From positions 1 to 64,000 of the forward strand of contig NW_021835996.1 of the NCBI RefSeq assembly GCF_006345805.1: a stretch of 64,000 bases of DNA, in the 5' to 3' direction. Positions within the stretch are counted from its first letter, which is position 1; the number at the start of each line of letters is the position of its first letter. Below, piece by piece: positions 2,130 through 64,000 of this stretch. A model generated the notes under the pieces. That model made no database searches and was not told the origin of the DNA. It saw only the letters and a program-made list of their open reading frames with translations. This DNA is from Octopus sinensis (lineage: Eukaryota). The position numbers and the translations under genes were made by a program.

Positions 2130-2760
2130 CTAATCGAGTTCTAAGTTAAATCTAGGAATACCACGATATCTTTGGAATGAAATAACGTCTAGAAAATAAA
2201 AATTGCAATCTACATATGAATGAATGAGTTCTTTGATTGTACAAAACACAGCCTTTCGAATGTGTTTTCATCCACTTTATTGTGTCATCCGAAGCCATCA
2301 ATTTGTATAAAATCATAGTAATGTCTTATTAAATCGTCAACTATCTTAGGATTTTTCGGTCTTCCACGAATTTGAATTCTGTCCCGTTATCAGACTAGAA
2401 TATCTGAAAGGGTATGATCCATGAAATGCTGTTTAATTTTTCAGCGACGTCAATTACACTTTCATTTCTAAGATTCCTTGTGGTTGGCATATTCCGAATA
2501 GACGTCAATAACGGTTAACACCAAAGAAAATGATCATTGTCATTTACAAACCATGGAAAAACACAATTTTATACCTTTTATGTCAATGTCTTTGGAATAT
2601 GCTTAAAAATCTATTAGCTGATTGTTATCGTGATATATTTTCTTGTTTATCATTAAAAATTTGAGTTTTTCCATTAAGAGTAATGCGAGTATAGCGTACA
2701 CGAAAGGATTTGAAAAACATAGTTCGACTCTCAAAGTGGAGAATTTGTTCTTAAAGTTTT
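2130..2760 (-). mobile_element. Degenerate Ginger-like (Gypsy-type) integrase remnant
   Basis: Minus-strand pieces LTVIDVYSEY, SDNGTEFK and DDTIKW...KAVFLYNQRTHS are homologous to the integrase at 59109-59836. Many stops and frameshifts. Confidence 0.65.
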
Positions 2761-2892
2761 AAAGGATATCGGATTAACACAAATTGTTTCAAGAAAATTT
2801 TTTCCTAAATTTTGTTTAATTAAATTAAAAAATAATTTAATTTTATTTAAGTAATATTTTATTTAAATAATTTAACTAAAAAATAAAATTAA

Positions 2893-4595
2893 CGTGATCA
2901 AGTAGCTGAACATATTCACATGAACAACCTCTATATTATGCATACTCCGACAGTAAATTTACAGAATTGATTTTTAGACGAATTCACCGAAACCGACGAG
3001 GAAGAATATGTCCAAGAACAAGTACTCTTATAGAATATAACACTCAAACAGAAAAAAAATCAGCCAAACTCTCAATCGAGATCCGCAGTCCATCACTATC
3101 AGCCTATTAAAGGTCTATTAAAAAGTCTCAGTTCAGGTTTTTTATTTTTTTAACCCCAGACACGTTTAACTGCATAAACAAAATAATCGACAAAGATTGT
3201 CTTACTGCAGGGGACATGACAAAAAGTAAATGAAGTTATCCTACATAGAAATACCCTTCGAGAAAAGTCACAAAGGTCAACGGCCGAACAAGTTCTCGAC
3301 AACGAACCCTCCTTATTCTCTACCGACTTGTAAGAAGAAAAGTCCTTACCAAAATCAACGGATGTGTGAACACAGGAAAAGAGGCAAAGTCTATCACGGA
3401 ATTAGCGAAACCGGGGAATTGGCCGTGTGAAAGTGATTTTTCTTGAAAATTTTTTTAGGTATAAAAACGTCGATTTTGGTCTTTAAAGACCGTCAACGAT
3501 ATTTGGAGGGAGAACACCGATTCAGAAACCGATTTCGGGGAAATTCACGGAAGAGTATCCTCATTGGGCAGAAAAGGAGTTGGGGAATCTCAACCGGTGA
3601 TTCTACGGAAAACCCCGAGATTATACAAGGCTGGGATTCGTGTCCTCAGCCTTTTTATAAAAGAACATGTGATTGTGATGTCCTTTGTAGGGAGGGAAGG
3701 ATGGTGAATTAATGAGCTTTAATCTCTAGGCCAGCACCTCTTTTGAAGGAAAGTTAAGTTGTCCTTGTCCTCGGATGTCGTCTCTACGTTCAATGTGTGC
3801 TTATGATGAGGAGAAATGTACCACGACTGTCACCTTGTCCACGGGATTTGAGTGAATTCAACCTCATGTTTGTGTCCTTCCTGATTGGTTAGGATGTTGG
3901 GGATCAGCTTTTTATTATTGACGTGGCACAATCTGTGGAACATGACCACCCCAATGCTCTCCACTTTTTGAGATCAGATTGTAAAAATGTTATGGTTTGT
4001 TACTTTATTATTTTTTAGCATTTTTCCGTCGGAATGGTTGGTACCGACGATGGGAATAAGGCGGTTGTTTGACTTTGTTGTCGATTTGAGTCTTGGAGTG
4101 GTGGATGAATCATTTGTGGAGGAGATTATGGAGGGATGTGCGGAATGAGACTGTTCACGATGAGAGGGAAGAAGTGTTTATGAATTCCTTCATTCCTCGG
4201 ACTCTTGATCAACTCAAGGGCCGAACGTGCATTTGAGTTGAGGCAGAGAGGGAATTAGATGGGGTAGTATTTTTTGGTATTTTTAGCTTATCAACAATAA
4301 CGTGGTTGGACTCAACCAGGACTTTTGTGGGGCAGATGTGGGCGAGGAATCAGAAAACGGGAGAAGTGGGGATTCTGGGGAGTCGGAAAGTTTGGAAGAG
4401 GGAGAATTCGTAGAAAGGAAGGAAAAAAGAGATGACATTTCTGTGAGGTTACGGGAAATGTCTCCCAATAGTCGCAAAGTTGATTGGTTATTATTTTTTA
4501 AGAGTCATAAAAAAGAAATAAAAGAACAGAATCGACTCCGGAGGCAAGAAAAGACCCCCAAGCACATAAAGAAGAGGGAGCATATTTATCGATGA
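2893..4595 (+). CDS. RIOK1: RIO1 serine/threonine kinase, with micro-introns and several 1-bp frameshifts; start approximate
   Basis: Motifs across frames: [85 protein letters not shown] and C-terminal [10 protein letters not shown]. Confidence 0.9.
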
Positions 4596-5394
4596 GACTT
4601 CGTAAATGATTTTTACACTTTGTAATCATTTAATAACATTATTCTTTATTGACTGCATTTTCTTTTCAATTCCAAGTATTTGCGCGGATTACTCTAGTTG
4701 GCTCTATTTTTGTTGGAGTGTCTATCGATGGTAAATTCATGAGCTTTATTGTCACAACTGAGATTTTGTTTGTTGCAACTGACAGTATTTCAGTGTAAAA
4801 TTAGCATTTAATTGCAAGGTTATACATGTCAGCATATCGTGCTGCTTTGAAAATTACATTTATTTGATGAGTATATGTTATACTCTTTATTAGGATGATA
4901 TATTTATAGGCTCGATCACACGGGGAAAGGAACTTTTTTAGGGAGGGAACTTACTCGATTATAGTCTTTTAATATAGATTTCCTTTTTTAAAAATATGAG
5001 CTCGGGCTTATAATATAGAGAACATAGTAATTTATTTTATTTTCATTACCTTTGCAAATTTAAGAGATATTTCCTACTCAATGTCAGGAAATAAATTTAA
5101 CAATATCGAAATAAATTATTACTAACTTGCCAATTATTTTGGAAAATTTCCTAACTGAAAAATCTGAAATTCTTTATTTATTGATTATTCCATAATTTGA
5201 AGTATTAATCTACGTCAAAACACTCATTATGTTGTGAGATTGAGCTAAGTGTTTTTTATTATACAATTCTTTGATCATTCACTGTTGTGAAAATTCATTA
5301 TTTTTAAATTCTACTTTTTCTGATAAACAGAATATTTCTGTCTGTCTTTATCTTATTTATAGGGCTTGACTTATGTTGGATTTTATCCTTCCAA

Positions 5395-6825
5395 ACAAAA
5401 GAACCTCTGGTATAGTACCAATCAACGACCGAGAAATATTAATGCAAAGTATTGAGGGGATAGATTTTTTGTATTTTGGCATAGAGCGCAGTAACATCTG
5501 TGCTCCAAACTATATCAGCAGTAGACCTGCCTATACAAAAACCACTTTGGCCAGGGGATAAAAATTTGTTAACTTTTTATCCGGTGTAATGGGATGAGGG
5601 ATAATGTTTTGCGTATGGAAGATAGTAGAATTATTGGTCTAAAGTTGCAAACGGGGCCTTTAGCTTTCCCGGGTTTATGTAATGGGATTAGCCATCCTTT
5701 TCCGAGAGCCGACGGATTATCTTCCTGAAGAGACCGATTGTAAACATCGGTGATTATTTTAGCTAGCTCCACTAGTGCGTGTTTTAAAAGTTCTGTCGGG
5801 ATATTGTCTGGCCCTGCGGATCTTCCGGTGTTCAACTTTTTAATAGCTTGCAGAATTTCCGAGAGACTTATCGGGTTTGTTAATGTGGAATTGTCAGGTT
5901 TTAAAAATTTCAGTGTCTGATCAGTTTTAGTATACATATTGAATAGGGAATCAAAGTGCGAAGCTAGAATACTAGCTTTTTCGACGTCCTCGGTAACTGT
6001 ACGATCGAGATTATGACAATGATAGGGGCCTCTGTTGAGGATGCGAATTGCTTTAAACATCATTGGCCCGTGTTTGTATTTCATTATTTCGGAAACTTGT
6101 TTTTCTGCTTCACTTTTGGCAAGAAATTTTTGTAATTGTTTCATCTTTGTTAATACTCTACCTCTCTGCGTACAGAGTTCTTTGATTTTCTCTGTGTTTT
6201 CCGATTGTAGTCTGAGTTCTTTTTGTATTAGAGAAAGTCGTCCGATTTCTGGACTACTTTGTTTGTGTCTCGATCCGTGTGTGGAACCCAAGACGTCAGA
6301 CGAGGTATTCCGTATTGCGGTAACTGTTTCCTCCCAAATCTTGTTAGCTGGTTGATTTTAGTAGATACAGTCGATGCTGTTTTTGAGGGTCGTACAATAT
6401 CGAAGATTGGTGAAGTCTTCGTATCCAAGCCTCTCCGTATCGTATCGTGCTGGGGCGGTGTCTTTGAGCTTTCCACGTATTCCATGGATTCTGTACAGCA
6501 TTAACTGAGCCTCAACAAGTTTATGATCGCAGCTGGTTAAAGTCCACCATATGACCTCGAGTTTTTCATTAGGGCCTTTTTATAGTCTATCTGGTTATAA
6601 ATCGGAATGGTATTTCTAAATTTATCTTTTCTAAACCAAGTCCAGGTGATTTTAATTTATAATAAAGAGCACTGAGTTGAGAGTTTTCCACATTTGATTT
6701 GAAGCACTGCGACACGGTCAGATGCCGCCCACACTCTTGACACGTAGTTAATAAGGTCCCGGTGAGCTGCGAACCTGAAACCATAATGTCGGGATTCCGA
6801 TCCGAGGGTAATAAGATGGAATTCG
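5395..6825 (-). mobile_element. RTE-like LINE ORF2, 5' portion (APE endonuclease to RT domain 3), inverted relative to its 3' portion
   Basis: Reading leftwards from about 6825: HYGFRFAAHR..SDRVAVLQ, then ASHFDSLFN, AGPDNIPTELLK, NFRPIILLS and QSGFCIGRSTADIVW. Confidence 0.8.
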
Positions 6826-7669
6826 TCAATCGGTTTTGCACATTGCAAGAACCGAAGAGTTTTCTTCACCCTGACGACGTTAAAATAATACACCTGCTTA
6901 TGCAGAACACTCATCTTTCTGTCAAACTTGGCAAATGTTTTTCCAACTTTTTTCGGGCTTCTCGTGGAGTCCCACAGGGGGTTTCGCTATTTTCGGCCCT
7001 CTTCGTTGTATACCTTGAAGCAGCACTAAGAGAGTTCAGAGCTCTCGTTGGGAACAATTATGAGGAGATGATATATGCAGACGATCTGGACTTTGTTTTT
7101 GAGAAAATTCAAACACTTCAGCACATTTTCAACAAACTTCCATACGTATTCTCGAAATGGTTTTTATCCGTAAATTCCAATAAAACGAAATTTACAATGC
7201 TCACACGTATTGATCGTAGATCCGACGAATCTTGGAGAAGGCAAATGAAACTGGGCTCGCATCTAGGTGACTCAGAAGATGTTACTCGCAGGAAGATTCT
7301 TGCTATGGATGCATTAACAAAATATCGGCTATATGGAATCACAAAAAATAAGATTAAATACCAGGCTCAGGATATATAAGGCTTTTATCATCCCGGTTCT
7401 TACTTATAACTCTGGCACATAAGGAATCTCTAAACACGATATGGACCGTCTTGATTCTTTACACAGAACACAGCTAAAATCGTTAATCAAAATCAAATGG
7501 CTTTTGAAGATAACTAATGAAAATCTTAATAATAAATGCAAATCCGGTTTCCTGTCAGATGACATCTTCAGATCGAGATGGAGCCTTTTTGGCCATGTCC
7601 TACGTTTAAACGACCTGGTTCCAGCAAAGAATGCAATGGATTATTTCTTCGCGCAGACGGAGTCTAGAT
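6826..7669 (+). mobile_element. RTE-like LINE ORF2, 3' portion (RT domains 3-7 and C-terminus), interrupted by a hAT
   Basis: GVPQGVSLFSALFVVYLEAALRE, MIYADDLDF and RWSLFGHVLRL. The frame resumes after the hAT target site duplication as SRFRDRPRK. Confidence 0.85.
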
Positions 7670-9916
7670 CAGGGTTTCTCAAGTTTTTTAACGTCGGGGC
7701 CAAATCGATAATTAACCATTGTCTTCGGGGCCGCAGAATAAATTAAATTAAAACTTTCATTAACTTTTAACTAATTTTTTTTTAGATTCATTTTTTATTC
7801 AGAAACCGAGATAGTTAGTCTTAATTAATTAAAGGAAAATGACTAAAACGAAAAATTGTTAACTAAAACGAAAAATTGTTAGCTATTTTAACTAATTGTT
7901 AACTAATTTGTCATAACACGGAATATAGGAGGCACATGTAGATCGCAAAAGCTGGCATAAGTGATTATCAGTCAATTTATTTCGATATTTATTTTTTATG
8001 TGAATCATTTTACTGAAAATTGACTCACATAAATAAGTGGATCCGAACATTGAAGCATATTTATAAGCATTTATGAGTATATTCGGATATTTTTCTTTGG
8101 GAAGTGAACTATAAAATTCCATTAAATTTTCAATCTTTTGCACTGAGGTAAATTGCACATCTGATTGAAGGTCTATCAATTCTAATTGGAGTGATGGCGG
8201 AGCATTCTTAGGATCTATATTGAATGGTGCTGCAAAAATTTTCATTGATGGCAAAATTTCATCAAAATTCTTAAAATAAACTAAATTTTAATAAACCTTA
8301 GAACGTTTTTCAAATTCAACAATAAGGTGACTGATAATGGTAGTATATTTTTCAAATGAACCGTTAGCTTTATTTTCACTCAAACAAGTAAAATGAATTG
8401 TATCTTTGAGCATTATTTGATCCCTCCAAAGTTTTAATTTTGATATAAAAGAAGCAATAGATCCATAGAGTTGATGGCAAAATTTATATTTCCCCTGTAA
8501 TTCACAATTTAACGACGATAAATGAGAGGTTAGATCTACCCAAAAAGCTAAATCGGCAATCCACTCTTTACTGCTCAACAAATCATGGTATTTGTGGTCT
8601 TTAACAAATTCTCTTATTTGAGGGAGTAGTTCATAAAATCTAACTTCTATTCAAGCAAATATACCTTTTGAGGCACGCGGCACGACTCAACCATCGAACA
8701 GTGGTATGGTAAAGCACATCATTATGCACTGTGTCAATTTCCACTAACATTTTTTTAAATCTCCTGTGATTGAGAGATTTACCGCGTATCCAATTCACAA
8801 TGGACAACACCGTACTTATTACATTTTGCATTTTAAGTGACTTTGCGATTATATTCTCCTGATGAATGATACAATGTTGCCAAAATATAGGATCAAGATT
8901 TTTTTCAAGTCTCCATTCTGAATAAAGTCCATGAAACCCTTTATTACGACCAATCATATTCGCCCCCCCATCAGTACATATGGAAATTATTTTGGAAGGA
9001 TCAATGTCAAATTCTTTAATACTTTCAAGGAATTCGTTAAGTACATCCATTCCTTTTGTAGTGCCTTTTAATGAACGAAGAGAAAAAAATTCTTCAGAAA
9101 TTTTAAAATCCGAAGTGACACCTCTAATGCATACGACCATTTGTTCGGTATCAGAGATATCTTTACTCGTGTCGACAGCAAAAGAATGATATAAAAAATC
9201 TTTCGATGTTCTATAAAAATTATTTTTAATAGTAAAGAACTTGATTAGCTGACGGGCAAGGTCCTCAAAAATACATTCTATTCTTCTTGTAATAGTATCA
9301 TTACTTAATGGTAATCGTTTTGCAATATTTTGTATATTTGACGGACAACATTCATCACAAAAAATGGAAATAGCAGTTTTAATAATTTCTCCGTCAGAAT
9401 AAGGTTTCATATTTACAGCAAGAAGGTGGCTAATTTTATAAGACGTTAATAACTGATGCTTATTTTCCACTGGTTTAAATATTGAGGACTGATTTTTAAA
9501 TGACGTCTTTAATATATTGAGTTTTTTTTTCATTGACTCTCCGAGATATAAATTGTATATTTCGGAGTGCTTCTTATAATGACGTTCAATAGTATAATTT
9601 TTCAATGAATTAATGACACAGTTGCATATCAAACAAACAGCTTTACCATTCAGTTCAACGAAAAAAAACTTTTCTTCCCATTCAATTTGAAATTCTCTAT
9701 TTTCTTGAGATAATGTTCGATATTTCTTTGATGGCATGAAAAAATACTCAACCTGAAATATATTTACAAACACGTGTAGTTAAAATATTATCTTTAATAA
9801 TATTAATTTACAATTAATTTTATATCCAAAATTTATTTTAATGTTTGGAAGTCGGGGCCGCAAAAAAGATTCTCGGGGCCGCATGCGGCCCCGAGGGCCG
9901 CACTTGAGAACCCCTG
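7670..9916 (-). mobile_element. Complete Buster-type hAT DNA transposon (SPIN/GTF2IRD2-like), 2247 bp
   Basis: TIRs CAGGGTTTCTCAAGT and CAGGGGTTCTCAAGT. Perfect 8-bp TSD GTCTAGAT at 7662-7669 and 9917-9924. GGGCCGCA subterminal repeats. Confidence 0.95.
7892..9737 (-). CDS. hAT transposase of about 587 aa after removing micro-introns at 9211-9240, 8640-8664 and 8270-8296
   Basis: BED-type zinc finger (CLIC...HYKKH), VDTSKD, ICTDGG, HCIIHQE, VRWLSR, WIADLAF, LQG and STYLCESIFS. The spliced exons total 1764 nt in one open frame. Confidence 0.85.
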
Positions 9917-9924
9917 GTCTAGAT

Positions 9925-10140
9925 TTCGTGATAGACCAAGAAAGATTTGACTTTTCCAGCAGAACACTTAGAGACAATTATTAATAAGACCCAATGGGGA
10001 CTCTTTGGCCACAGACTACGGATGGTTCCCTCTGTTCCAGCTAATAACATCATGAAAACATTTTCATGCTCTGGGCCTTTTCGAGGTAGGCAACGGAGGA
10101 AGCTACCACTGACCATAATAACCCAAAGCATGCCAGATTG
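9925..10140 (+). mobile_element. LINE C-terminal remnants: tail of the 6826 element plus a second related fragment
   Basis: FRDRPRK, then QWGLFGHRLRM..PANNIM..FRGRQRRKLP. Confidence 0.6.
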
Positions 10141-10144
10141 TTAC

Positions 10145-10569
10145 TATAACATTTCCCATACTAAATGTTGTGGTCATGACACACTAAATATGGTTAACAT
10201 AAAACTTTGAACAAAGAATTTTTTGGTGTTAATCCCATTTAGTTTGGTGTTAATCCCATATTGTTTGGTATTAATCCCACTTAGTTTGATGTTAATCCCA
10301 CTTAGTTTGATGTTAATCCAACTAAGTTTTCTCCTAATCCCAGTTAGTTTGACGTTAATCCCAGTTAATTTGACGTTAATCCAATTTAGTTTGACGTTAA
10401 TCCCAGTTAATTTAACGTTAATCCAATTTAGTTTGACGTTAATCCCAGTTAATTTGACGTTAATCCCAGTTAGTTTGACGTTAATTCCATTTAGTTTTCT
10501 GATAATCCCACTTAGTTTTCTGCTAATCTCACTTAGTTTTCTGAAAATACATACTATAGAAAATGCATA
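10145..10569 (+). mobile_element. Internally deleted, non-autonomous derivative of the adjacent IS630/Tc1-like element
   Basis: Left end TATAACATTTCCCATACTAAATG resembles the left end at 10575. It contains the last codons of the transposase (LNMVNIKL* versus LNMVNTKF*), the 21-bp array, and an imperfect inverted end ...CTATAGAAAATGCATA. Confidence 0.7.
10229..10543. repeat. 15 tandem copies of a 21-bp unit, consensus about TTAATCCCASTTAGTTTGACG
   Basis: Units start every 21 bp from 10229. Inverted copies lie at 10591-10688 and same-orientation copies at 11813-11915. Confidence 0.95.
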
Positions 10570-10574
10570 CGATC

Positions 10575-11915
10575 TATACAATTTTCCATACTAAATGGGA
10601 TTAATGCCAAACTAAGTGGAATCAATAACAAGCTAAGTGGGATTAACAGTAAACTAAGTTGGTTTAATAACGAACTAAATGGAATCAATAAAGGATTACG
10701 TTTATTATAAATATAATTTTTCGATCCAGCGCAAAAAAATGCCACGTAAATCATTGGAAGAGAAAGAACAATTGCATAGAAATAAAATAGATTTAATTTC
10801 AGCTGCAGAATCTGGTGGAGATTGGAAAAAAACAGCAATTGAACTCAATATCTCAAGAACAACAGCATATCGTTGGATAAAGGATGGAGTTAAACCTGAC
10901 GCGAGAGGTGGAAATTATCGAAAAAAGTTTAACAAAGAACATGTCGATTTTATTATATCATGCATCGAAGACGATAACACAATTACCCTTCATGGAATAA
11001 AACAAAAATTTGAATTACATTTTCCGCAATTATCAATATCAAAAACGAGTATCGCTCGACATCTCGATCTAAGTTTATATACATTAAAGAAATTGAGATT
11101 CGACCCTGAAGAAGCTAATTGTGAAATTAACAAAATCAAAAGGAAGGAATTTGCTGAAAAATATTTAAAATTTCAATCGGAAAATAGACCAATTTGTTTT
11201 ATGGATGAATCAAATTTTAATCTTCATATCAGCAGGACAGAAGAAAGATCGCTAAAAGGAACAAGATGTACTACTCTAGCTGCTGCGTCAGAAGGGTCAA
11301 ATATACATCTAATTGGATGCATCTCAAATCTAGGACTCATTTACTATGAAATACAAAGGGGAGCTTTTAAAAAAGAGCAAGCTTGTCACTGGATGAAAAA
11401 TTGTTTGAGGCAAGCACGGATTAAACATGATGGTCCAGTTATTATGGTGTTGGACAATGCACTAGCTCACAGTGGTATCGAAGTTCTTCAATTGGAAGAA
11501 TTTAATGATTTTCATATTCTTTGTCTCGGTCCGTACAGTCCGATGCTTAACCCCGTCGAACATGTATGGTCCAAAATAAAAGCTCACGTAAAAAGAGACA
11601 TCTCTTCTCTAAAAAACCAAATTCTATTTCAACAAGGAAAAGATTTGTCAATTATAGATTATCGAACAGGGATACTTGAAAAAATAACTGTGGATAGAAT
11701 AAAAACAATTACATCTGATGATTGTGTGAGCTTTATTTCTGAAATACAGAAAAATATTGGTGACATGTTAAATATGGTTAACACCAAATTTTAAACAAAG
11801 AATTTTTTCGAGTTAATTCCATTTAGTTCGCTATTAATCCTATATTTTTGATATTAATCTTACTTAGTTTTCTATTGATTCCACTTAGTTTGTTATTGAT
11901 CACACTTATTATTAA
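10575..11915 (+). mobile_element. IS630/Tc1-mariner superfamily element with 21-bp subterminal arrays; right end truncated by a LINE 3' end
   Basis: About 5 inverted 21-bp units precede the transposase ORF and about 5 direct units follow it. Confidence 0.8.
10739..11794 (+). CDS. IS630-like DDE transposase, 351 aa, open and intronless
   Basis: HTH motif (ISRTTAYRWI), FMDESNFN, VLDNALAH and LGPYSPMLNPVEHVWSKIK. Confidence 0.9.
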   Translation: MPRKSLEEKEQLHRNKIDLISAAESGGDWKKTAIELNISRTTAYRWIKDGVKPDARGGNYRKKFNKEHVDFIISCIEDDNTITLHGIKQKFELHFPQLSISKTSIARHLDLSLYTLKKLRFDPEEANCEINKIKRKEFAEKYLKFQSENRPICFMDESNFNLHISRTEERSLKGTRCTTLAAASEGSNIHLIGCISNLGLIYYEIQRGAFKKEQACHWMKNCLRQARIKHDGPVIMVLDNALAHSGIEVLQLEEFNDFHILCLGPYSPMLNPVEHVWSKIKAHVKRDISSLKNQILFQQGKDLSIIDYRTGILEKITVDRIKTITSDDCVSFISEIQKNIGDMLNMVNTKF

Positions 11916-12509
11916 CACGTTCACGAGAGCCATAATATTTCAAATTCCTCATGTGCCGCAAAAGATATTAGAGAACTAGTTAGGTTGCTCCAAGCTCCTT
12001 GTTCTTAGCTAGGTTCCTCGGAGAGTCCAGATCGTCACCAGATGTCACTGTTTTCTTCAAGCTTTTTAGGTCATTTTGTAAAACGATTGGTAGGGTAGTT
12101 CTTGGTCTTCTACGAAAGCGTTTGATATTAAAGGAAGAGTAGTAATCTTCAATTGCGATATTCGGGAAGGATGTCGGGTTTAATTTCAGGAAGTGTCAAA
12201 ACAGTCTCTTAAAAGAGATAATAATCTCATGGCTTAAAGGCGTACAGTCACACTTATTGTACAGTCCACTCCGTGCGATCCTGGATGACCAGGACATTTC
12301 AGTTACAGTAAACCAAAATAAAAAACGAACACTACATTTTTCCTAAAATTTCCAAGAAACCAATAAAAAAAAAATCTAAATAGAATTTTAACAATATATA
12401 AACAATGACCAATATTTTTATTTTTGCAAAAAAAAAATATTTACTGACTTTTTACGGCAAAAGTATAATCTGAACCAAAATAAAAAACGAACAAAATTTT
12501 ATTTACAAA

Positions 12510-13526
12510 TTAAAATTTAGTATGCCCACCACGTGTCGCAATTACAGACAATATTCGTTCACTCATAGTTCCTACCAATGATTTTGCATAATCCGCTCCT
12601 ATCTCATTCCAAATTTTTTGTAATTCTTCAAAAAGTTCCTCTTTTTTGGAATACGATTTCCCCCTTATTTTTGCCTTCATATAGCTCCATATGTGTTCAA
12701 TGGGGTTAAGATCCGGGCTTTGCGCTGGCCAAGGTAGCAATTCGATATTATTTGTCTCAAAGAATCTTTTTGCAAGCACACATGTGTGTTTTGGGTCGTT
12801 GTCCTGTTGAAAAATTGGATCAATAATCCTATTTTTTTCCAGAAATGGCAACAAATTGTTTGCCAAAATGTTAACATACAATGATCCATTCATTATTTTT
12901 TTTATCCAAACCAAATTGCTAAAATATTCAGACGTAAATGCACCCCATATCATCACACTTCCTTTTCCAAATTTTACGGTTTCAGTAATATTACGTGAAA
13001 CAAACTTTTCGGATTGTTGTCTCCATACAAATCTTCGTCCGTCGTTGTTTACTAAGTTGAATTTGCATTCGTCGCTGAATATAACGTGATTCCAATAAGT
13101 AGATGGTAGCATATTCCATCTTTGACAGATTTCCATTCTTCGTTTTTTGTGTTTTTTAGTAAGATGTGGTCTTTTAGTAGGCGGAAATGCTTTGAAACCT
13201 CTTTGTTTTAGTGTATTTCTGATTGTTTCAGGTGTTACATTTTTCCCAGTTTCTTCTTTTAGTGCCTTCGCATATTTTACGCAATTAAAATTTGGATCTT
13301 CAATCCTTGCCTTATTGATTTTTTTAAAATCTTCTTCATTTAGGAGCCGGGGACGACCAGAACCATATTTTCTTGTGCATGGAATATTTTGTTTATATTT
13401 TCGAATTGTTTTCGATATGGTATCAAGTGATCTTTTAGTTATACGTTGTATTTCGCGATACGTCTTTCCGCATTTGTAAATACCGATAATTGTTCCCTTT
13501 TCTTCGAAACTCAATTGTCTGACCAT
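12510..13526 (-). CDS. Tc1 DD34E transposase, 338 aa, intact and intronless
   Basis: GRPR, WNHVIFSDECKFNL, FQQDNDPKHT and WPAQSPDLNPIEHIW. There are 34 residues between the second D and the E. Confidence 0.95.
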   Translation of the reverse strand: MVRQLSFEEKGTIIGIYKCGKTYREIQRITKRSLDTISKTIRKYKQNIPCTRKYGSGRPRLLNEEDFKKINKARIEDPNFNCVKYAKALKEETGKNVTPETIRNTLKQRGFKAFPPTKRPHLTKKHKKRRMEICQRWNMLPSTYWNHVIFSDECKFNLVNNDGRRFVWRQQSEKFVSRNITETVKFGKGSVMIWGAFTSEYFSNLVWIKKIMNGSLYVNILANNLLPFLEKNRIIDPIFQQDNDPKHTCVLAKRFFETNNIELLPWPAQSPDLNPIEHIWSYMKAKIRGKSYSKKEELFEELQKIWNEIGADYAKSLVGTMSERILSVIATRGGHTKF

Positions 13527-13727
13527 AATTATAGCGTGTAAGTTATTATAGCGTGCAAAATATTAATAATTTTTTAAAAAAAATCATATATTTAATAACA
13601 TTTACAAATAAAAAATTTTGTTCGTTTTTTATTTTGGTTTAGATTATACTTTTGCTTTAAAAAGGCGGTAAATATTTTTTTTTTTGCAAAAATAAAAATA
13701 TTGGTCATTGTTTATATATTGTTAAAA

Positions 13728-15037
13728 GAATAGAATAGAATAGAATAGTGTTTATTGAGCGAAAAGAAAAAGAAAAACAAGGAAGAAAAACATCGGCGGG
13801 GAGATAAAAACAAGGCACCGAAGTGTCTCTTTCCATGCGTATCCCCAATACTAGTCATGTTTGACGACAATTCTCCAAGACCATCCGGATCGTGGGCACA
13901 GAGGATTCTTGTGAGTCTTTAGCCTTCCGTCAAGTTGTACTCCGTAAGCCAATTTCATAGCGAAACGTCTTGTCTTTTCCAACTGTTCGATCAGGTAGTC
14001 ACTCTCCTCCGTACCGTACCAGCCCTCGTAGCCATATGTGAGGACTGGCTGCACACACGTTTTGTATACGTAGATGTACGTTTCCGGATCCAGATGGAAC
14101 CTGGTTAAGCTTTTGAGGATCCTCACACTCCTCTTTCTCTGATTTGCTATATGCTCTACGTACGAGCCACGACAGTTAATGGTTGCTCCCAGGTAAGAAA
14201 GATTTTTTCTTTTCGAGAGATCCATCACATAGCTACTCATCGCATATGCACAAGACTCCGCATAGCGACTCCCTCTCCGCAACCATGAAATGGTGCTCTT
14301 CTCCGGTGCTAGGGTCAAACCCTTCTCTATAGTCCACATCTTTAGCGTTGCAATGTATGATTTCAGTCGTCTCCAGGACTGCGATATCCTTTTCGAGGTA
14401 TCCATGACCAGGATATCGTCAGCATAGATAACGAGCTTGCCAGTACGTGTCGACGGCAGAGGAATGTCCGCCAAGAAGAGGTTGAACAGAAGTGGACTCA
14501 AGATAGATCCCTGCGGGACTCCCCTTCTAAGTTCCACACACCCCGATAGGCGGTTTCCACAGCGGACAAATGATTGTCTTCCTGACAAGAAGCTCTCCAG
14601 CCATCGATAGGTCTTTATCCCGGCTCCGATGTCATGGATTCTGGAGAGTAGGCCCAGGTGCCACACGCTATCGAAGGCTTTGGCCAGATCCAGACACACC
14701 ACAGTTAGCCATGCTTCATTTCTGTCAGCACGGGATAATTGGTGCTCTAACTCCCTGAGGCAGTCCCCTGTGGATCTTCCTCCACGAAATCCCCATTGTT
14801 CAGGTAAAAGCAAATTTTGTGATTCTATATGACCAGAGAGTCTGTTAAAGACAATCTTTTCCATTGTCTTAGAGAAAGCACAAATGAGGCTAATTGGCCG
14901 GTAGTTCTGTGCCAGCAGTGTCGATTTACCAGATTTTGGAATCATTCGAACAATCGTATGCTTCCACGCCGATGGAAGGTGTCCGAACGTCCAGCTGGCG
15001 TGAAACAACATAGTCAATGCTCGTATCAAGATGCTCG
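13728..15037 (-). mobile_element. 5'-truncated Jockey/I-group LINE with an open 392-codon RT frame and (TTCTA)n tail
   Basis: YRPISL, DLAKAFDSVWH, GVPQGSILSPLLF and IYADD. 13-bp TSD TATATTGTTAAAA at 13715-13727 and 15038-15050. Confidence 0.9.
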
Positions 15038-15375
15038 TATATTGTTAAAATTCTATTTAGATATTTTTTTAATTGGTTTCTAGGAAATTTTAGGAAAAAT
15101 GTAGTGTTCGTTTTTTATTTTGGTTTACTGTATGTTTCTTAGATAATTCCTGTGGAACGGGTCTGAAACGGAACGGGCCTTTCGAGGGATAGAGTTGAGT
15201 TAGTTGAGAACATTTTCATTTAGCAGTGGTGGGCGATTTTTGCAAAAAAGGGGTCCGGGCTATATTTTTGTGATTCTAAGTTTATCATATTTACCATGGC
15301 ATCTGTTATTTTTTTTAGTTTTTTACATGTTGTTTTTACTTCAAAAATTGTAATTGATCTTTTAAGGGTCTAGGC

Positions 15376-16759
15376 CAGGGGTTCTCAACCTTTTAGCTCA
15401 AGGGCCAAATCGATAATTAAGATTAGCTTCGCGGGCCGCACAAAAAATATTTATATATTTTTATATTTTCCAAGCCGGTAACTCGCTTGCAATCCGAAGT
15501 GCAGCCACTGCTGATGGTAATGAGTTTTTGGACTCTGTTTTTTCTTTTTTTAATTTCCATTTCCTTTATAAAGAATTACAAGCTAAAAAATCTAAAAAAG
15601 GCGTTGTAACTAAAAAGAAAGTATTATTTGTTTATTAAGTTTTTGAAATCCGGAATAAGTAAAGTCGAAGAAGTTCGTAAAAGCTGACTCGAGTGATTAT
15701 CCGTGAGATTGTACGATATTTATTTTTTATGCGAATCATTTTCCTAAATATTGATTCGCATAAAAAGTAGATCCAAACATTGATATATTCATATATGCAT
15801 TGTGTGTTATATTTTTGAATTTGTCTTGAGGAATTAATTCGTAAAAATTAATAATGGACGCTTTTTTGAACAATGCCGCCAGTTCTATATCATGTTGTAA
15901 ATTAATGAGTTCTAGTTGAAACTTTGCAGGCGCATCCTTAATTTCCACGCTGAATGGAGTTGCGAATATTTTCATTAAAGGAAGGAATTTTTTAAAATTC
16001 TAAAAATTAAATTTATATAAATGTACCCCAAAACGTGCTTCAAATTGATTAATTAAATCACCAATTATGGATATGTATTTTCATAAGCAGCGCCTTCGTT
16101 GTTTTCAGATAGTGAATAAAAATGAGATGTATCTCCCTCTTTAAGGGAAGTCATCCATAAATATAATTTTTCGATAAACAAAGAAATATATCCATATACC
16201 TGATAACAGAGTTTGCCTTTTCCTTGTAATTCAACATTGAGATCCGACAAATGCGTGGTTAAATCAACATAAAAAGCCAAATCGGCAATCCATCTTTCAT
16301 CGTAAAGTTCATCGAAAATTACTCTGTCTTTGGTAAACTCCTTAATTTCTGGAAGCAATTTATAGAACCTTTAATAAAATATTAAGGCATTTCGAACGAC
16401 TTAACCACCTCACTTCAGTATGAAAAATAACATCTCCATACTCAGCATCAACTTCTTCCAAAAAAGATTTAAAATATCGGTGATTGAGCGCTTTTGAGCG
16501 TATCCAATAAACGATATTAACGACTTTTTTGGAAACATGTTCCATTTTAATGGACTTGGCGATAAGATTTTCTGGTGAATTATGCAGTGATGCCATATTA
16601 ATTGATCGAAACTATTTTCGGTTATATCTTTGGAACAATCAATAAATAATTAAATTTTAACATTATTAAAAAATTAAAAAAGTTAGTTACTCTAGAGGGG
16701 CCGCAAAAAAAATCCTGCGGGCCGCATGCGGCCCCGGGGGCCGCATTTGAGAACCGCTG
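15376..16759 (-). mobile_element. Internally deleted Buster-type hAT, relative of the 7670 element
   Basis: TIRs CAGGGGTTCTCAA and CAGCGGTTCTCAA. Perfect TSD GTCTAGGC at 15368-15375 and 16760-16767. Transposase pieces EVRWLSRSKCL and WIADLAF. Confidence 0.92.
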
Positions 16760-23446: not shown

Positions 23447-24545
23447 ATGGAATGTGGAGACCAAGTAAGGAATGTGCCAAATAATTAAGCCTGCCCCAAT
23501 CTACACGTATTTTGTTCATGACAGAAACTGTTCGTTTTGCGGCAAATTCTTCAAAAACAAAATCGATTTAATTCGTCATAAACGAATTCACACAAACGAA
23601 AGGCCTTTCAACTGCCAGATCTGCGGACGGTAAGCCACCCTGGTGAAACAACAGGTCATTCTCACGTAAATTCACTCTGAACATCCACATGCTCTCCCAT
23701 TCCTCCCAGAAGACCTTTTCTTGCATGATATGCGGAAGACCCTTCAAATACACCAACAGTCTCCGCAAACACATGAAACAACATTTCGGATTTGCCTTAA
23801 AAAACGTAAAAAACAGCCAACAATCAGAGAACAGAATCCTCCGCCAATGACCGACCAGATATATTGTCTGAACAGTCAACTTACACGTCACCCCTGCGGA
23901 CATTGTGGGCGTAGTTTCAGTCGTCCGTCTTCCCTGGCAGTCCACGTGAGGATCCACACAGGCGAAAGACCTTTTTCCTGCGATGTCTGTCCTGCCAAGT
24001 TTGTGACCAAATCGGCTCTGGTCGAACACCGAACTGTCCATTCTGGGAGGGACGAGTCTTTAAAGTGTCCGTTTTGTGATTCGACTTTCACACGCAAGTC
24101 GAGTCTCAGTCGCCACAAAGCGTCAATTCACGGAATCGGGCTTCGGAGGATCCGGTCTAGTCTGACTTGTCGTTTTTGTGTGAGAAATTTCAACGTTCGC
24201 CAAAATTTAGCACGACATGAAAAAACTCACCAAAAAACCAATTCGGAAAATTGGCTCCCCTTCTCGACAGAAGAAATCATTTTGCAGGAAAGTGACTAAT
24301 TTGAAAACGGAGGACAGTCCGTGGTGTACCCCTCCTGTTTCTACCGACTGACCAACAGAAAAGGACAGAAAGGGGTGTTTCCTTATAACTGTCAGTTTTG
24401 TGGAAAGGGGTTTGCGAGGGCGTCTAATTGGAGGAGACATGTCAGTACTTTTCCAAGGAAACAATACGAGCGTGGGACATGTCATTTGTTCTTTGCTTGA
24501 GCAGGCGCCTTGAGGAACCACGAACAGCGATATCACGTGTATTGA
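23447..24545 (+). CDS. Multi-finger C2H2 zinc finger protein, at least 7 fingers, with micro-introns; 3' end degenerate or uncertain
   Basis: Fingers include [24 protein letters not shown]|RSF, CMICG, CGHCG..HTGERPF, CDVC, CPFC, CRFC and CQFCGKGF. Introns of 25, 25, 29 and 21 nt restore one frame. Confidence 0.8.
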
Positions 24546-54256: not shown

Positions 54257-54523
54257 AGAAAGCGCCCGAACTTGGAGAAAGTGCTGTCCAGGAAAGATCC
54301 TCTGAATGGATGTTGATAAATGGTTCTTTTTGGATACAATTTAAAATTATATCTACGCAATCAGACGAGCGCTAGTCTCGACAAAAACCACATGCTTTCG
54401 ATTTTTAGATTTTAATCTTAATAAAAAATAATTTAGGTCTGTAAATTATTTTTATTTTAATTTTTTAAAAATAAGATAATTTAAATAGTTTTTCTTTTAT
54501 AATTGCTCTTGTTGTCTTGCATT

Positions 54524-55600
54524 ATGGTTAATATTAAAGATGAAGATACATACATTCGAGTAACCTTTATATCGATTACTCCTAAGGAAATTGAACACAT
54601 CATCGAACGTGATTATTTCCCTGGAGTAGAAATGCCCAACGACATCTCATACATAGAACCAATGACTCCTGCGGATCTACCAAGTTCAAGAAGATTGTCA
54701 ACAGGAAAATTAGATCTGACAAACCAATCAACCATCCCAAAACACCCAAAGTCTCTCTCTTTGTCCCTGGATGACTATTTATTGAAAAATCAAAGTGAAG
54801 ATAACGTAGTTTTCTCTCAAATGCTCAAATCTTCCAATGCAGAGAGAGAACGTCACCGGGCAATAATGATCGAGCCAGGAAAGCCAATTCCAGCCCTAAC
54901 AAACCCCCTCCACTTCGTCCCAGACGGATCTGAATTAACTAACGAGGAAAAGTCCCAGCACGAGCAAACAAAGCAAATAATATGCAAAAATTCGACTCGT
55001 TTTTCTGCGGATTTTGTGAGACAACAAAACCGACGAAGCACAGTGGCAGAAGGAACTTTATTGGACAATTCCAGAAAGTCTTTGAGTGGACGAATAGGAC
55101 CAGATGGGCGGGAAATTATTGTATCGGAAGGGGTGGGAAGAAGTGGATATCTCCCTACACCTTCGCCTGTTCCTGGTAATTTGTGTTTGTTGACTGATTT
55201 AGGTGTTGGTGAGTCGCCGATTTTGTGTTGGGGACAAATAGACGGGACCCCGATGAGATTGGCAGGATCGACACCAATTCGAGAATTTAAGGTATTCTAG
55301 CGAGTAAGGATTGTTGTAGATTCCCGAGATTCCTCTCAGAGATAAAATTGGATTTGATTTATGCAATCAAGCAAAGAAGGAAAAGCAACGAAAGAGGGAA
55401 CTCAGTTCTATCAATTCGTTTTAATTTGAATGGGTGACTTTGCCTAGTTCGAAGAGGAGTTCTTCTATTCGGAACTCTTTCGAGTCGTTTTCTCCGGCGG
55501 CCAGAAATTTGTTTATGAACAGAGTTTCCAGTTCTCGACGGTTTGTTTTTATTTTTATCGTAGACAAACGCCCCTCTTAAAAAACGTCAAAAAGGACTAA
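54524..55600 (+). CDS. ESS2: Splicing factor ESS-2 (DGCR14)
   Basis: DEDTYIR|EIEHIIERDYFP, LSLDDYL..NQSEDN..F, TPSPVPG..SPILCWGQIDGTP, FK|IPE and SPAARNL. Confidence 0.85.
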
Positions 55601-63172: not shown

Positions 63173-63240
63173 CAGTCTAACCCCGGCTGGGGCATCAAAG
63201 TGCCCCGAAAGCGGCGGTGCCCTTTCAAACAGGGGCCTGG
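63173..63240. mobile_element. pogo-type terminal inverted repeat
   Basis: TA-CAGTCTAACCCCGGCTGGGGCA...AGTGCCCCGAAAGCGGCGGTGCCC resembles the reverse complement of the right end of 42172-43985. Confidence 0.65.
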
Positions 63241-63285
63241 TTCAAACTATTGAATTATTTGAATAATATTAAAAAAATTCAAAAT

Positions 63286-64000
63286 ATGGATTTTCGAAGT
63301 GGTTATTTGAGAGGAATAAGCAAATATAAAAATACCATCGTAGAACCTAAATGGGATTATGGTACAGCCGGTTATCGGGGATGCGCCGATACATTGAAAC
63401 TACTTTTTTTCAAAGTTGGATTGTTTGCCTCTGTTCGGTCTATCTCTCTTAAATCAAATATCCGCTTAATGATTACAGCATTCCACAACCCTCCAGAAGA
63501 TAATGGAATAAAAATAGTAGACCCAGGTGGAGGAATGATGGTTCAAGAAGATGAAGAATTTTGTAATGAATTTGTTAACTCGAATGACCAACAATTATTA
63601 TCATCACTGCTTGATATACTAAAAACGAAAAATAAAACAAAAACTAATATTATAATCGGATACGACAGCCGAGGCTCCTCTCTTGAACCTTTATTATGTT
63701 TAATGGATGGAATTGATCTTTTTGTTGATTATATCGTTCCCATCAATATTGGACTCACCACAACTCCATGTCTGTATTTTTCCGTGTTTTATAACAACGA
63801 AAAATGTTGGAATCCTGAAAATTCAATCGAAATTTATTTAACTCGGCTTATCGGAGGCTATAAAAAAGCTACAGATCTTATAAATAAAGACTTTTTCAAA
63901 TCTTCCATCCTTATGTGCCAATGGAGTTGCTTCCGTCGTTCTCAGTGAAAGTTCCATAAAATCCACAATTTTTGATTATAAATTGAATAATGCAGCAATT
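63286..64000 (+). pseudogene. PGM3: Intronless phosphoacetylglucosamine mutase copy, apparently inactive (runs off window)
   Basis: YGTAGYRG, MITAFHNPPEDNGIKIVDP (canonical TASHNP), IGYDSRGSS and GLTTTP. A frameshift at the DCANG motif near 63915. Confidence 0.8.

Follow-up and report, generated by a model that had tools for sequence, protein, structure and literature searches.

A young Buster-type hAT transposon with three predicted micro-introns of host type in a probable dicyemid genome co-assembled with Octopus sinensis

Results and discussion

The element described here is a 2,247-bp hAT transposon that occupies positions 7670-9916 of a 64,000-nt stretch of DNA (positions 1 to 64,000 of contig NW_021835996.1, RefSeq assembly GCF_006345805.1 of Octopus sinensis). 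This stretch is called the window below, and its contig C12467. The transposase gene lies on the minus strand and is broken into three open reading frames (ORFs). We consider it probable that the element is a young autonomous Buster hAT whose gene carries three micro-introns of host type, in a genome that is probably that of a dicyemid. The gene would have three ordinary spliceosomal introns of the host, 30, 25 and 27 nt long, between its four exons, and the host would be an animal whose introns are ultra-short, most likely a dicyemid (Mesozoa). An earlier note, made from the letters of the window, had proposed an intact hAT element that depends on micro-intron splicing by its host. The element is indeed intact and young, with GT-AG introns of host size, but the octopus does not appear to be that host.

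Structure of the transposase gene

The three stop-to-stop ORFs on the minus strand extend over 8640-9779, 8288-8650 and 7892-8287. Three segments, at 9211-9240 (30 nt), 8640-8664 (25 nt) and 8270-8296 (27 nt), are each bounded by GT and AG on that strand. Removal of the 25- and 27-nt segments yields a frame of 1,794 nt (597 aa), and removal of all three yields 1,764 nt (587 aa). The coordinates, the three ORFs, the segments and the 587-aa frame of the earlier note were thus all reproduced.

In the predicted four-exon gene, all on the minus strand, the coding part of exon 1 (9241-9737, with the ATG at 9735-9737) comprises codons 1-166 and contains an N-terminal CCHH zinc finger formed by C35, C38, H53 and H57. 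Intron 1 (9211-9240) is in phase 2 and splits the codon of K166; it contains no in-frame stop, and its read-through would add the residues FFTIKNNFYR. Exon 2 (8665-9210, codons 166-348) carries D179, D246, the H278-C279-x-x-H282 motif and W339. Intron 2 (8640-8664), also in phase 2, splits the codon of R348. Its last three nucleotides, the TAG of the 3' splice site, are in frame with exon 2, so that read-through into the retained intron ends at 365 aa, close to the length given in the earlier note. Exon 3 (8297-8639) comprises codons 348-462 and is followed by intron 3 (8270-8296), in phase 0 after K462, with an in-frame TAA if retained. Exon 4 (7892-8269) holds codons 463-587 and the TAA stop codon (7892-7894), and encodes the hAT dimerisation domain and the presumed catalytic E544 within a CES motif.

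Evidence that the segments are introns

Restoration of the frame was dropped as stand-alone evidence, because ten GT..AG pairs rescue the first break and four rescue the second. Only the pairs described above also give a gapless alignment to homologues and match the introns of a related family. The junctions left by the 25- and 27-nt segments (…RWLSRAACLKR|FYELLP… and …EFEKRSK|NFDEILP…) were gapless against 10/10 homologues at 34-53% identity, and the 30-nt segment corresponded exactly to a ten-residue insertion relative to the same number of homologues (10/10). The three segments with their GT..AG boundaries are present in all 13 full-length copies found in the assembly, and decayed, internally deleted copies with 81-92% identity have them at the same places. 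The earlier note had raised the possibility that other copies might expose the segments as degraded coding sequence or indel errors; the copies examined, intact and decayed, keep them.

The related family, here termed family B (the window element belonging to family A), encodes a protein 51% identical to that of family A and has at least eight copies on the same small contigs. Its GT..AG introns of 27, 26 and 28 nt match those of family A in all three codon positions and in phase, and their sequence is unrelated. The lengths in family A (30, 25 and 27 nt) compare with 23-28 nt in the sampled host introns, the 30-nt intron being slightly above that range. Since position and phase have been kept while the sequence turned over, and since the length stayed at 25-30 nt, the comparison argues that the segments are functional spliceosomal introns, to the exclusion of decay and assembly error. 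We infer that all three are spliced. The earlier note had treated the 30-nt intron as optional. Its GT-AG boundaries were confirmed, and it coincides exactly with an alignment gap. Since family B has, at that codon and in that phase, a GT-AG intron of 27 nt, the 30-nt intron is probably constitutive, a third intron and not an optional extra.

The predicted transposase

The hAT dimerisation domain PF05699 was found above the Pfam cut-off (27.6 versus 21.4 bits, E 2.6e-6), in agreement with the earlier assignment. The 'BED finger' of that assignment is a zinc finger at the N-terminus, but the label is approximate: the best model was the CCHH 'Spin-doc' zinc finger, which scored just under its cut-off (25.3 versus 27.3). 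In an alignment of 11 sequences, D179, D246, E544, W339 and H278-C279-x-x-H282 (587-aa numbering) occupied invariant or near-invariant columns. D179, D246 and E544 may be the equivalents of D180, D248 and E572 of Hermes.

We also inspected the AlphaFold model of P0003, a relative with 52% identity and not the 587-aa protein itself (predicted local distance difference test score, pLDDT, 79.8). Against the Protein Data Bank (PDB), its only significant matches were to the Hermes hAT transposase; the top 12 were all Hermes (E 1.5e-10 to 9e-9), and the best had a probability of 1.00. A sequence search of the PDB with the transposase gave no match, and a profile search of the PDB gave only chance-level matches to DNA polymerase lambda (E 0.011). 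When mapped on the P0003 model, the intron 1 site is in the stretch that links a helix to the first catalytic strand, and the sites of introns 2 and 3 are both inside insertion-domain helices.

The 587-aa enzyme would thus start with a zinc finger, continue with an RNase-H-like domain bearing D179, D246 and E544, and end with the hAT dimerisation domain. The full enzyme could be produced only from mRNA from which at least introns 2 and 3 had been removed. The enzyme may be active.

Host of the contig

The Octopus sinensis assembly comprises 2.72 Gb in 13,516 contigs, and its mitochondrial COX1 is identical to O. vulgaris/O. sinensis records. The CCT chaperonin genes on chromosome-scale contigs have exons kilobases apart, that is, kilobase-scale introns. 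A second full set of CCT genes, of compact structure, is found on small contigs. The CCT-zeta gene located at 485 kb on C12467, the contig of the window, has introns of 24, 28, 24, 25 and 24 nt, and another CCT gene on a small contig has introns of 25, 26, 24 and 23 nt. All DNA matches to the element (63/63) were on small contigs and none was on the octopus chromosomes. A second animal genome, whose introns measure 23-28 nt, is present in the assembly, and the contig of the window belongs to it.

An innexin gene on C9082, a contig that bears the element, is annotated as 'innexin unc-9-like [Octopus sinensis]', and its close relatives were found only on the same small contigs. Because its best matches outside the assembly are rotifer proteins at 34% (one gene was examined), it is an animal gene, spiralian-like and without a cephalopod orthologue outside the assembly.

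As to the identity of this animal, introns below 30 bp have been reported among animals only in dicyemids and myxobolid myxozoans (PMC13644364). The median intron of Dicyema sp. is 27 bp (PMC6543705), and the genome of D. japonicum, obtained from the renal sacs of O. sinensis, has 36.7% GC, 49% repeats and many copies of long interspersed nuclear elements (LINEs) (PMC6736024). The composition of the window, with 30-43% GC and several reverse-transcriptase (RT) and transposase ORFs, resembles that of D. japonicum. Since host introns of 23-28 nt fit the animals known for introns below 30 bp, and given the cephalopod association, the second animal is most likely a dicyemid that was co-assembled with Octopus sinensis.

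Introns of 25 nt are typical of Paramecium. A ciliate origin, or an alternative genetic code, was ruled out: exons end with TAA or TAG, the innexins are an animal family, and the code is the standard one. A COX1 search of the assembly gave no dicyemid COX1; it picked up only the mitochondrion of the octopus, nuclear fragments of mitochondrial DNA and octopus contigs rich in microsatellites. One COX1 copy, at C1425:413645-414982, scores as the mitochondrial one (449 bits, 12 TGA) and lies in a contig of nuclear size, being either a recent mitochondrial insertion or a mis-join.

Many RefSeq contigs of Octopus sinensis thus appear to derive from a second animal, probably a dicyemid, whose genes are annotated as octopus proteins. 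They are often annotated in truncated form, because the annotation did not model introns below 30 nt; the transposase itself is recorded as 'GTF2IRD2-like' octopus proteins of 365, 362 and 256 aa. This has a practical bearing on annotation and contamination screening.

Element ends, copies and age

The element is flanked by a perfect 8-bp target-site duplication (TSD), GTCTAGAT, at 7662-7669 and 9917-9924, as is usual for the hAT superfamily. The terminal inverted repeats (TIRs) have 15 nt and one mismatch: CAGGGTTTCTCAAGT on the plus strand at 7670-7684, at the 3' end of the gene, and CAGGGGTTCTCAAGT on the minus strand (the reverse complement of 9902-9916), at its 5' end. The perfect TSD and near-perfect TIRs of the earlier note are therefore as it described them. 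The consensus form, CAGGGKTTCTCAAGT, is a short TIR of the CAG/YARNG type known from hAT elements, and the pattern occurs four times in the 64-kb window, compared to 0.25 occurrences expected by chance. The TCGGGGCC motif has ten occurrences in the whole window, five of which lie within the subterminal ~70 nt of the element ends; these motifs are putative transposase-binding sites. The 3' untranslated/subterminal region (7685-7891) has TCGGGGCC at 7695 and 7726, an AATAAA on the minus strand at 7794-7799 and a 20-nt tandem duplication at 7842-7881. The 5' untranslated/subterminal region (9738-9901) has the motif at 9853 and 9874, with an inverted copy at 9887.

The genome contains at least 13 full-length copies among the 63 DNA matches to the element. 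Twelve copies have an 8-bp TSD of their own, with a consensus near nTCTAGAT (T4 in 12/12, A5 in 11/12 and A7 in 12/12). The T4 and A5 of this set agree with the target preference nnnTAnnn, which Arensburger et al. reportedly described in 2011 for Buster-type elements. In 11 of the full-length copies, 0-3 substitutions in 2,247 nt separate the sequence from the consensus. The spliced ORF is intact as assembled in three copies, namely that of the window and those on C8210 and C10954.

More than 12 kb of the window can be aligned collinearly to contig C9002, at 96-98.6% identity. On that contig the site of insertion is empty and shows one GTCTAGAT without an element. The insertion is therefore a polymorphism of haplotypes or co-infecting strains, and it arose long after these had diverged. 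Near-identical copies and insertion polymorphism, which the earlier note had suggested looking for, are both present; together with the intact ORF, they show that the family is very young and was recently active. In view of this youth, the spliced cDNA would be a reasonable candidate for an active Buster-type transposase.

Where near-identical copies differ, they mostly do so by single-base indels in homopolymers; substitutions are few. Such indels may be noise of long-read assembly, which would artificially break many of the ORFs. We also note that the element sits in the 3' part of a LINE-like repeat (window 7404-7669 and 9925-10140), beside an RT ORF at 6741-7379; paralogous copies of this repeat, at 74-91% identity, run uninterrupted through the insertion point.

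Related families and history of the introns

A third family, decayed and represented in the window at 15376-16759, has an insert at the position of intron 3 and probably also at that of intron 2. The nearest relatives outside the assembly, P0003 and P0004 (52% identical), are uninterrupted ORFs, in a clade that also holds a protein of Clavelina lepadiformis. The statement of the earlier note that Buster transposases elsewhere are single-exon genes thus holds for the closest outside relatives. Families C and D, other Buster families of this assembly, likewise have uninterrupted ORFs. Two intronless Buster-type families with intact single ORFs of 597-603 aa were located at C12467:85437-87161 (also on C12596, C8713 and C9729) and at C8596:81688-83457; such families on the small contigs have several equal-scoring copies. 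All homologues are GTF2IRD2-like, with FAM200-ZBED5 Pfam domains. We also asked whether P0002 (660 aa) might represent a spliced family B transcript, but it is only ~50% identical to that family and was ruled out.

In the tree, which was built without an Ac-clade outgroup and without the TcBuster sequence, families A and B and the intronless outside clade group together with 100/100 support. Parsimony favours, without proving it, a single gain of the introns by the common ancestor of A and B. The introns would then be old, having arisen in the ancestor of at least two, and probably three, related families of this genome. They would have been kept while their sequence turned over completely, and family A would have amplified very recently and would still be polymorphic.

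A bolder scenario is that a Buster lineage gained three introns de novo in a genome with the shortest introns known among animals, kept them through ~50% protein divergence and family splits, and is still mobile. As a whole we regard this as a speculative proposal, possible but rather unlikely. If true, it may mean that introns are easily created where 'GT...AG plus about 25 nt' suffices. The introns might then help the element through export or translation, by evading the surveillance of intronless transcripts, or by self-limitation through retention, and the element would be a natural reporter of intron birth and splicing fidelity in dicyemids.

A further Buster family is found on the octopus chromosomes, with many intact ORFs of ~610 aa (open frames 598-640 aa). 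The C8596-type family is 48% identical to it and groups with it at 98/98, which makes the two a parasite/host pairing.

Alternative explanations

That the interruptions are not introns at all, and mark either a dead copy with small insertions or sequencing and assembly indels, is hardly credible to us. Many single-base indels do separate the copies in this assembly, but the segments are 25-30 nt long and identically placed in 13/13 full-length copies and in those of 81-92% identity. They are bounded by GT..AG, their removal aligns the protein without gaps to ten homologues, the same codons of the sister family bear segments of different sequence, and outside the segments the exons are open and conserved. 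We give equally little credence to their removal from DNA, by a programmed elimination like that of the internal eliminated sequences (IES) of ciliates, instead of from RNA. Chromatin is indeed eliminated and rearranged in the somatic cells of dicyemids (Noto 2003 and Awata 2006, as cited in PMC6543705). The boundaries, however, are GT..AG and not TA, the size and weak signals are the same as those of housekeeping-gene introns on the same contigs, and none of the 63 genome matches is a copy that precisely lacks a segment. A more serious contender, although still an unlikely one, is that 9211-9240 stays in the mRNA as a coding, in-frame insertion of ten residues before the first catalytic strand, leaving only two introns. 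The segment is free of in-frame stops in family A, as is its counterpart in family B, and in the P0003 model the site lies between the helix 150-172 and the strand 177-186, in a loop that could tolerate an insertion. Against this, the GT..AG falls exactly at the edges of the alignment gap, and family B has a GT..AG segment of another length (27 nt) at the same codon and phase. Moreover, the read-through peptides FFTIKNNFYR (A) and YANCFVIFRI (B) are unlike each other while their flanks are conserved, and the segment is A+T-rich, like the other introns.

That the element and its contig are part of the genome of the octopus, so that the micro-introns would be foreign to the splicing of the host, seems very improbable. 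This reading has in its favour that the contig stands within the Octopus sinensis assembly and that RefSeq names its products octopus proteins. The chromosome-scale contigs, however, have no copy of the family, and the CCT gene of the contig itself has 24-28-nt introns, versus kilobase-scale introns in the chromosomal CCT genes. The full second set of CCT genes on small contigs, and the innexin that lacks a cephalopod orthologue outside the assembly, argue in the same direction. We thus retain a young Buster element with host-type micro-introns in a probable dicyemid, and must also note what weighs against it. We matched no sequence to a named Dicyema record, and the innexin search gave no Dicyema-named match, in collections that may lack Dicyema. 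Neither spliced product, of 587 or 597 aa, was found by exact look-up in the protein collection, in which a homology search gave no near-identical full-length product either. Ten of the 13 full-length copies have columns of frame-breaking single-base indels, 1-7 in most and more in others. Families A and B and the outside clade form a trichotomy in the tree, which gives no order among them. In addition, intronless Buster families with intact ORFs share the same contigs; in consequence, introns are not required for the persistence of a Buster element in this host.

The proposed truncation switch

The earlier note had compared intron 2 with the switch of the Drosophila P element. According to this proposal, regulated retention of the 25-nt intron, for instance in soma versus germ line, would yield a repressor of 355-365 aa similar to the 66-kDa protein of the P element. 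N-terminal fragments of the transposase act as inhibitors in P elements. Here, retention would end the frame at the TAG of intron 2 itself, at 365 aa if intron 1 is also retained, and the truncated product would keep the zinc finger, D179 and D246 and lose E544 and the dimerisation domain. In dicyemids, moreover, the axoblasts, which are germ-line-like, are set apart from the somatic cells, and the somatic DNA is rearranged (PMC6543705).

We nevertheless consider the switch improbable. The claim drew on the in-frame stop, which is generic to the sampled host introns: all four resolved host introns with a length of 3n have one, which in three is the TAG of the 3' splice site, and introns of other lengths shift the frame anyway. 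For this reason, the stop is no evidence of regulation. The 25-nt intron also has no unusual splice signal compared to the host introns. The exact 365-aa product is in RefSeq (XP_029654578.1, 'GTF2IRD2-like [Octopus …]', with siblings of 362 and 256 aa), but this sole record was predicted by a gene finder, in a pipeline that called no introns below 30 nt here. The protein collection holds no spliced or alternative product of the element. The stop in intron 2 is as expected for any intron in such a genome, and it fits a surveillance of unspliced mRNA, as described in other short-intron eukaryotes. The absence of an in-frame stop from intron 1 in both families A and B is mildly unusual and carries little weight (n = 2).

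Relation to known systems

The element resembles the Buster-clade hATs (TcBuster, SPIN and the domesticated ZBED5/GTF2IRD2/FAM200) in its 8-bp TSD with a central TA and its short TIRs that start with CAG. Also in common are a CCHH finger at the N-terminus, a DDE domain that is RNase-H-like and contains an all-helical insertion, and, at the C-terminus, the hAT dimerisation domain. This likeness was drawn from the GTF2IRD2-like relatives and from these features. Families A and B differ in their three introns of ~25-30 nt from the Buster relatives found within and outside this genome, which are single uninterrupted ORFs.

Autonomous hATs with host-spliced transposase introns are already known, among them Ac of maize and Tol2 of medaka. 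BuT2, a hAT of Drosophila buzzatii, is likewise autonomous with a host-spliced transposase gene, in its case of five exons (PMC3942097). Ac, Tol2 and BuT2 are members of other hAT clades, and their introns are of ordinary length; the introns described here occur in a Buster element, are at the lower size limit known for animals and are common to sister families. The Drosophila P element is formally alike, in that retention of one intron (IVS3) truncates the transposase after its DNA-binding part. It belongs to another superfamily, however, and has a characterised somatic splicing silencer and a demonstrated 66-kDa repressor, where the present element has only an in-frame stop.

Ultra-short introns in dicyemid host genes are also known. 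With 23-30 nt and signals reduced to GT(a)...AG, the introns in question are like those of dicyemids and myxobolids (PMC13644364; PMC6543705); those reports cover host genes, and the present introns are in a mobile element. Our literature search found no mention of ultra-short introns inside a mobile element, no description of a Buster lineage with host-type 25-30-nt introns at conserved positions, and no description of dicyemid contigs within the O. sinensis reference. The element would offer a clean and testable case of a mobile-element gene whose structure is shaped to an extreme splicing regime of its host. Its three conserved intron positions, set against intronless relatives elsewhere, bear on the origin and upkeep of ultra-short introns.

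Neighbouring features in the window

The decayed element at 15376-16759 (1,384 bp) is a second hAT-type element, with the TSD GTCTAGGC, the TIRs CAGGGGTTCTCAACC / CAGCGGTTCTCAAAT and the motif GGCCCCG in its subterminal part. In the interior, similarity to families A and B is ~65%. It is absent from C9002, which has an empty site with one GTCTAGGC.

Window 2613-15375 is collinear with C9002:484000-493611 at 96-98.6% identity, with several presence/absence differences. C9002 has an extra ~1.7 kb after window position 5972 and ~310 nt just past the hAT site; it lacks window 12306-15130 (~2.8 kb), which contains a Tc1/mariner-type ORF and an RT ORF. The window and C9002 are two haplotypes or co-infecting strains with active turnover of transposable elements.

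At 10174-10590 we observed a tandem array of a 21-nt unit, encoding (KLTGINV)n on the minus strand, with multiple off-diagonal self-matches in the comparison with C9002. Tc1/mariner-type transposase ORFs are found at 10679-11794 (plus strand, 371 aa) and 12510-13562 (minus strand, 350 aa), with DDE_3 and helix-turn-helix (HTH) domains; unlike the hAT lineage, both are uninterrupted and without introns. A 397-aa ORF at 13851-15044 (minus strand), in the stretch absent from C9002, has a complete RVT_1 reverse-transcriptase domain of LINE type (E 1.4e-35). Probable host genes are those for a C2H2 zinc-finger protein (23670-24299), an Es2/DGCR14-like nuclear protein (54503-55300) and a phosphoglucomutase-like protein (63181-63948).

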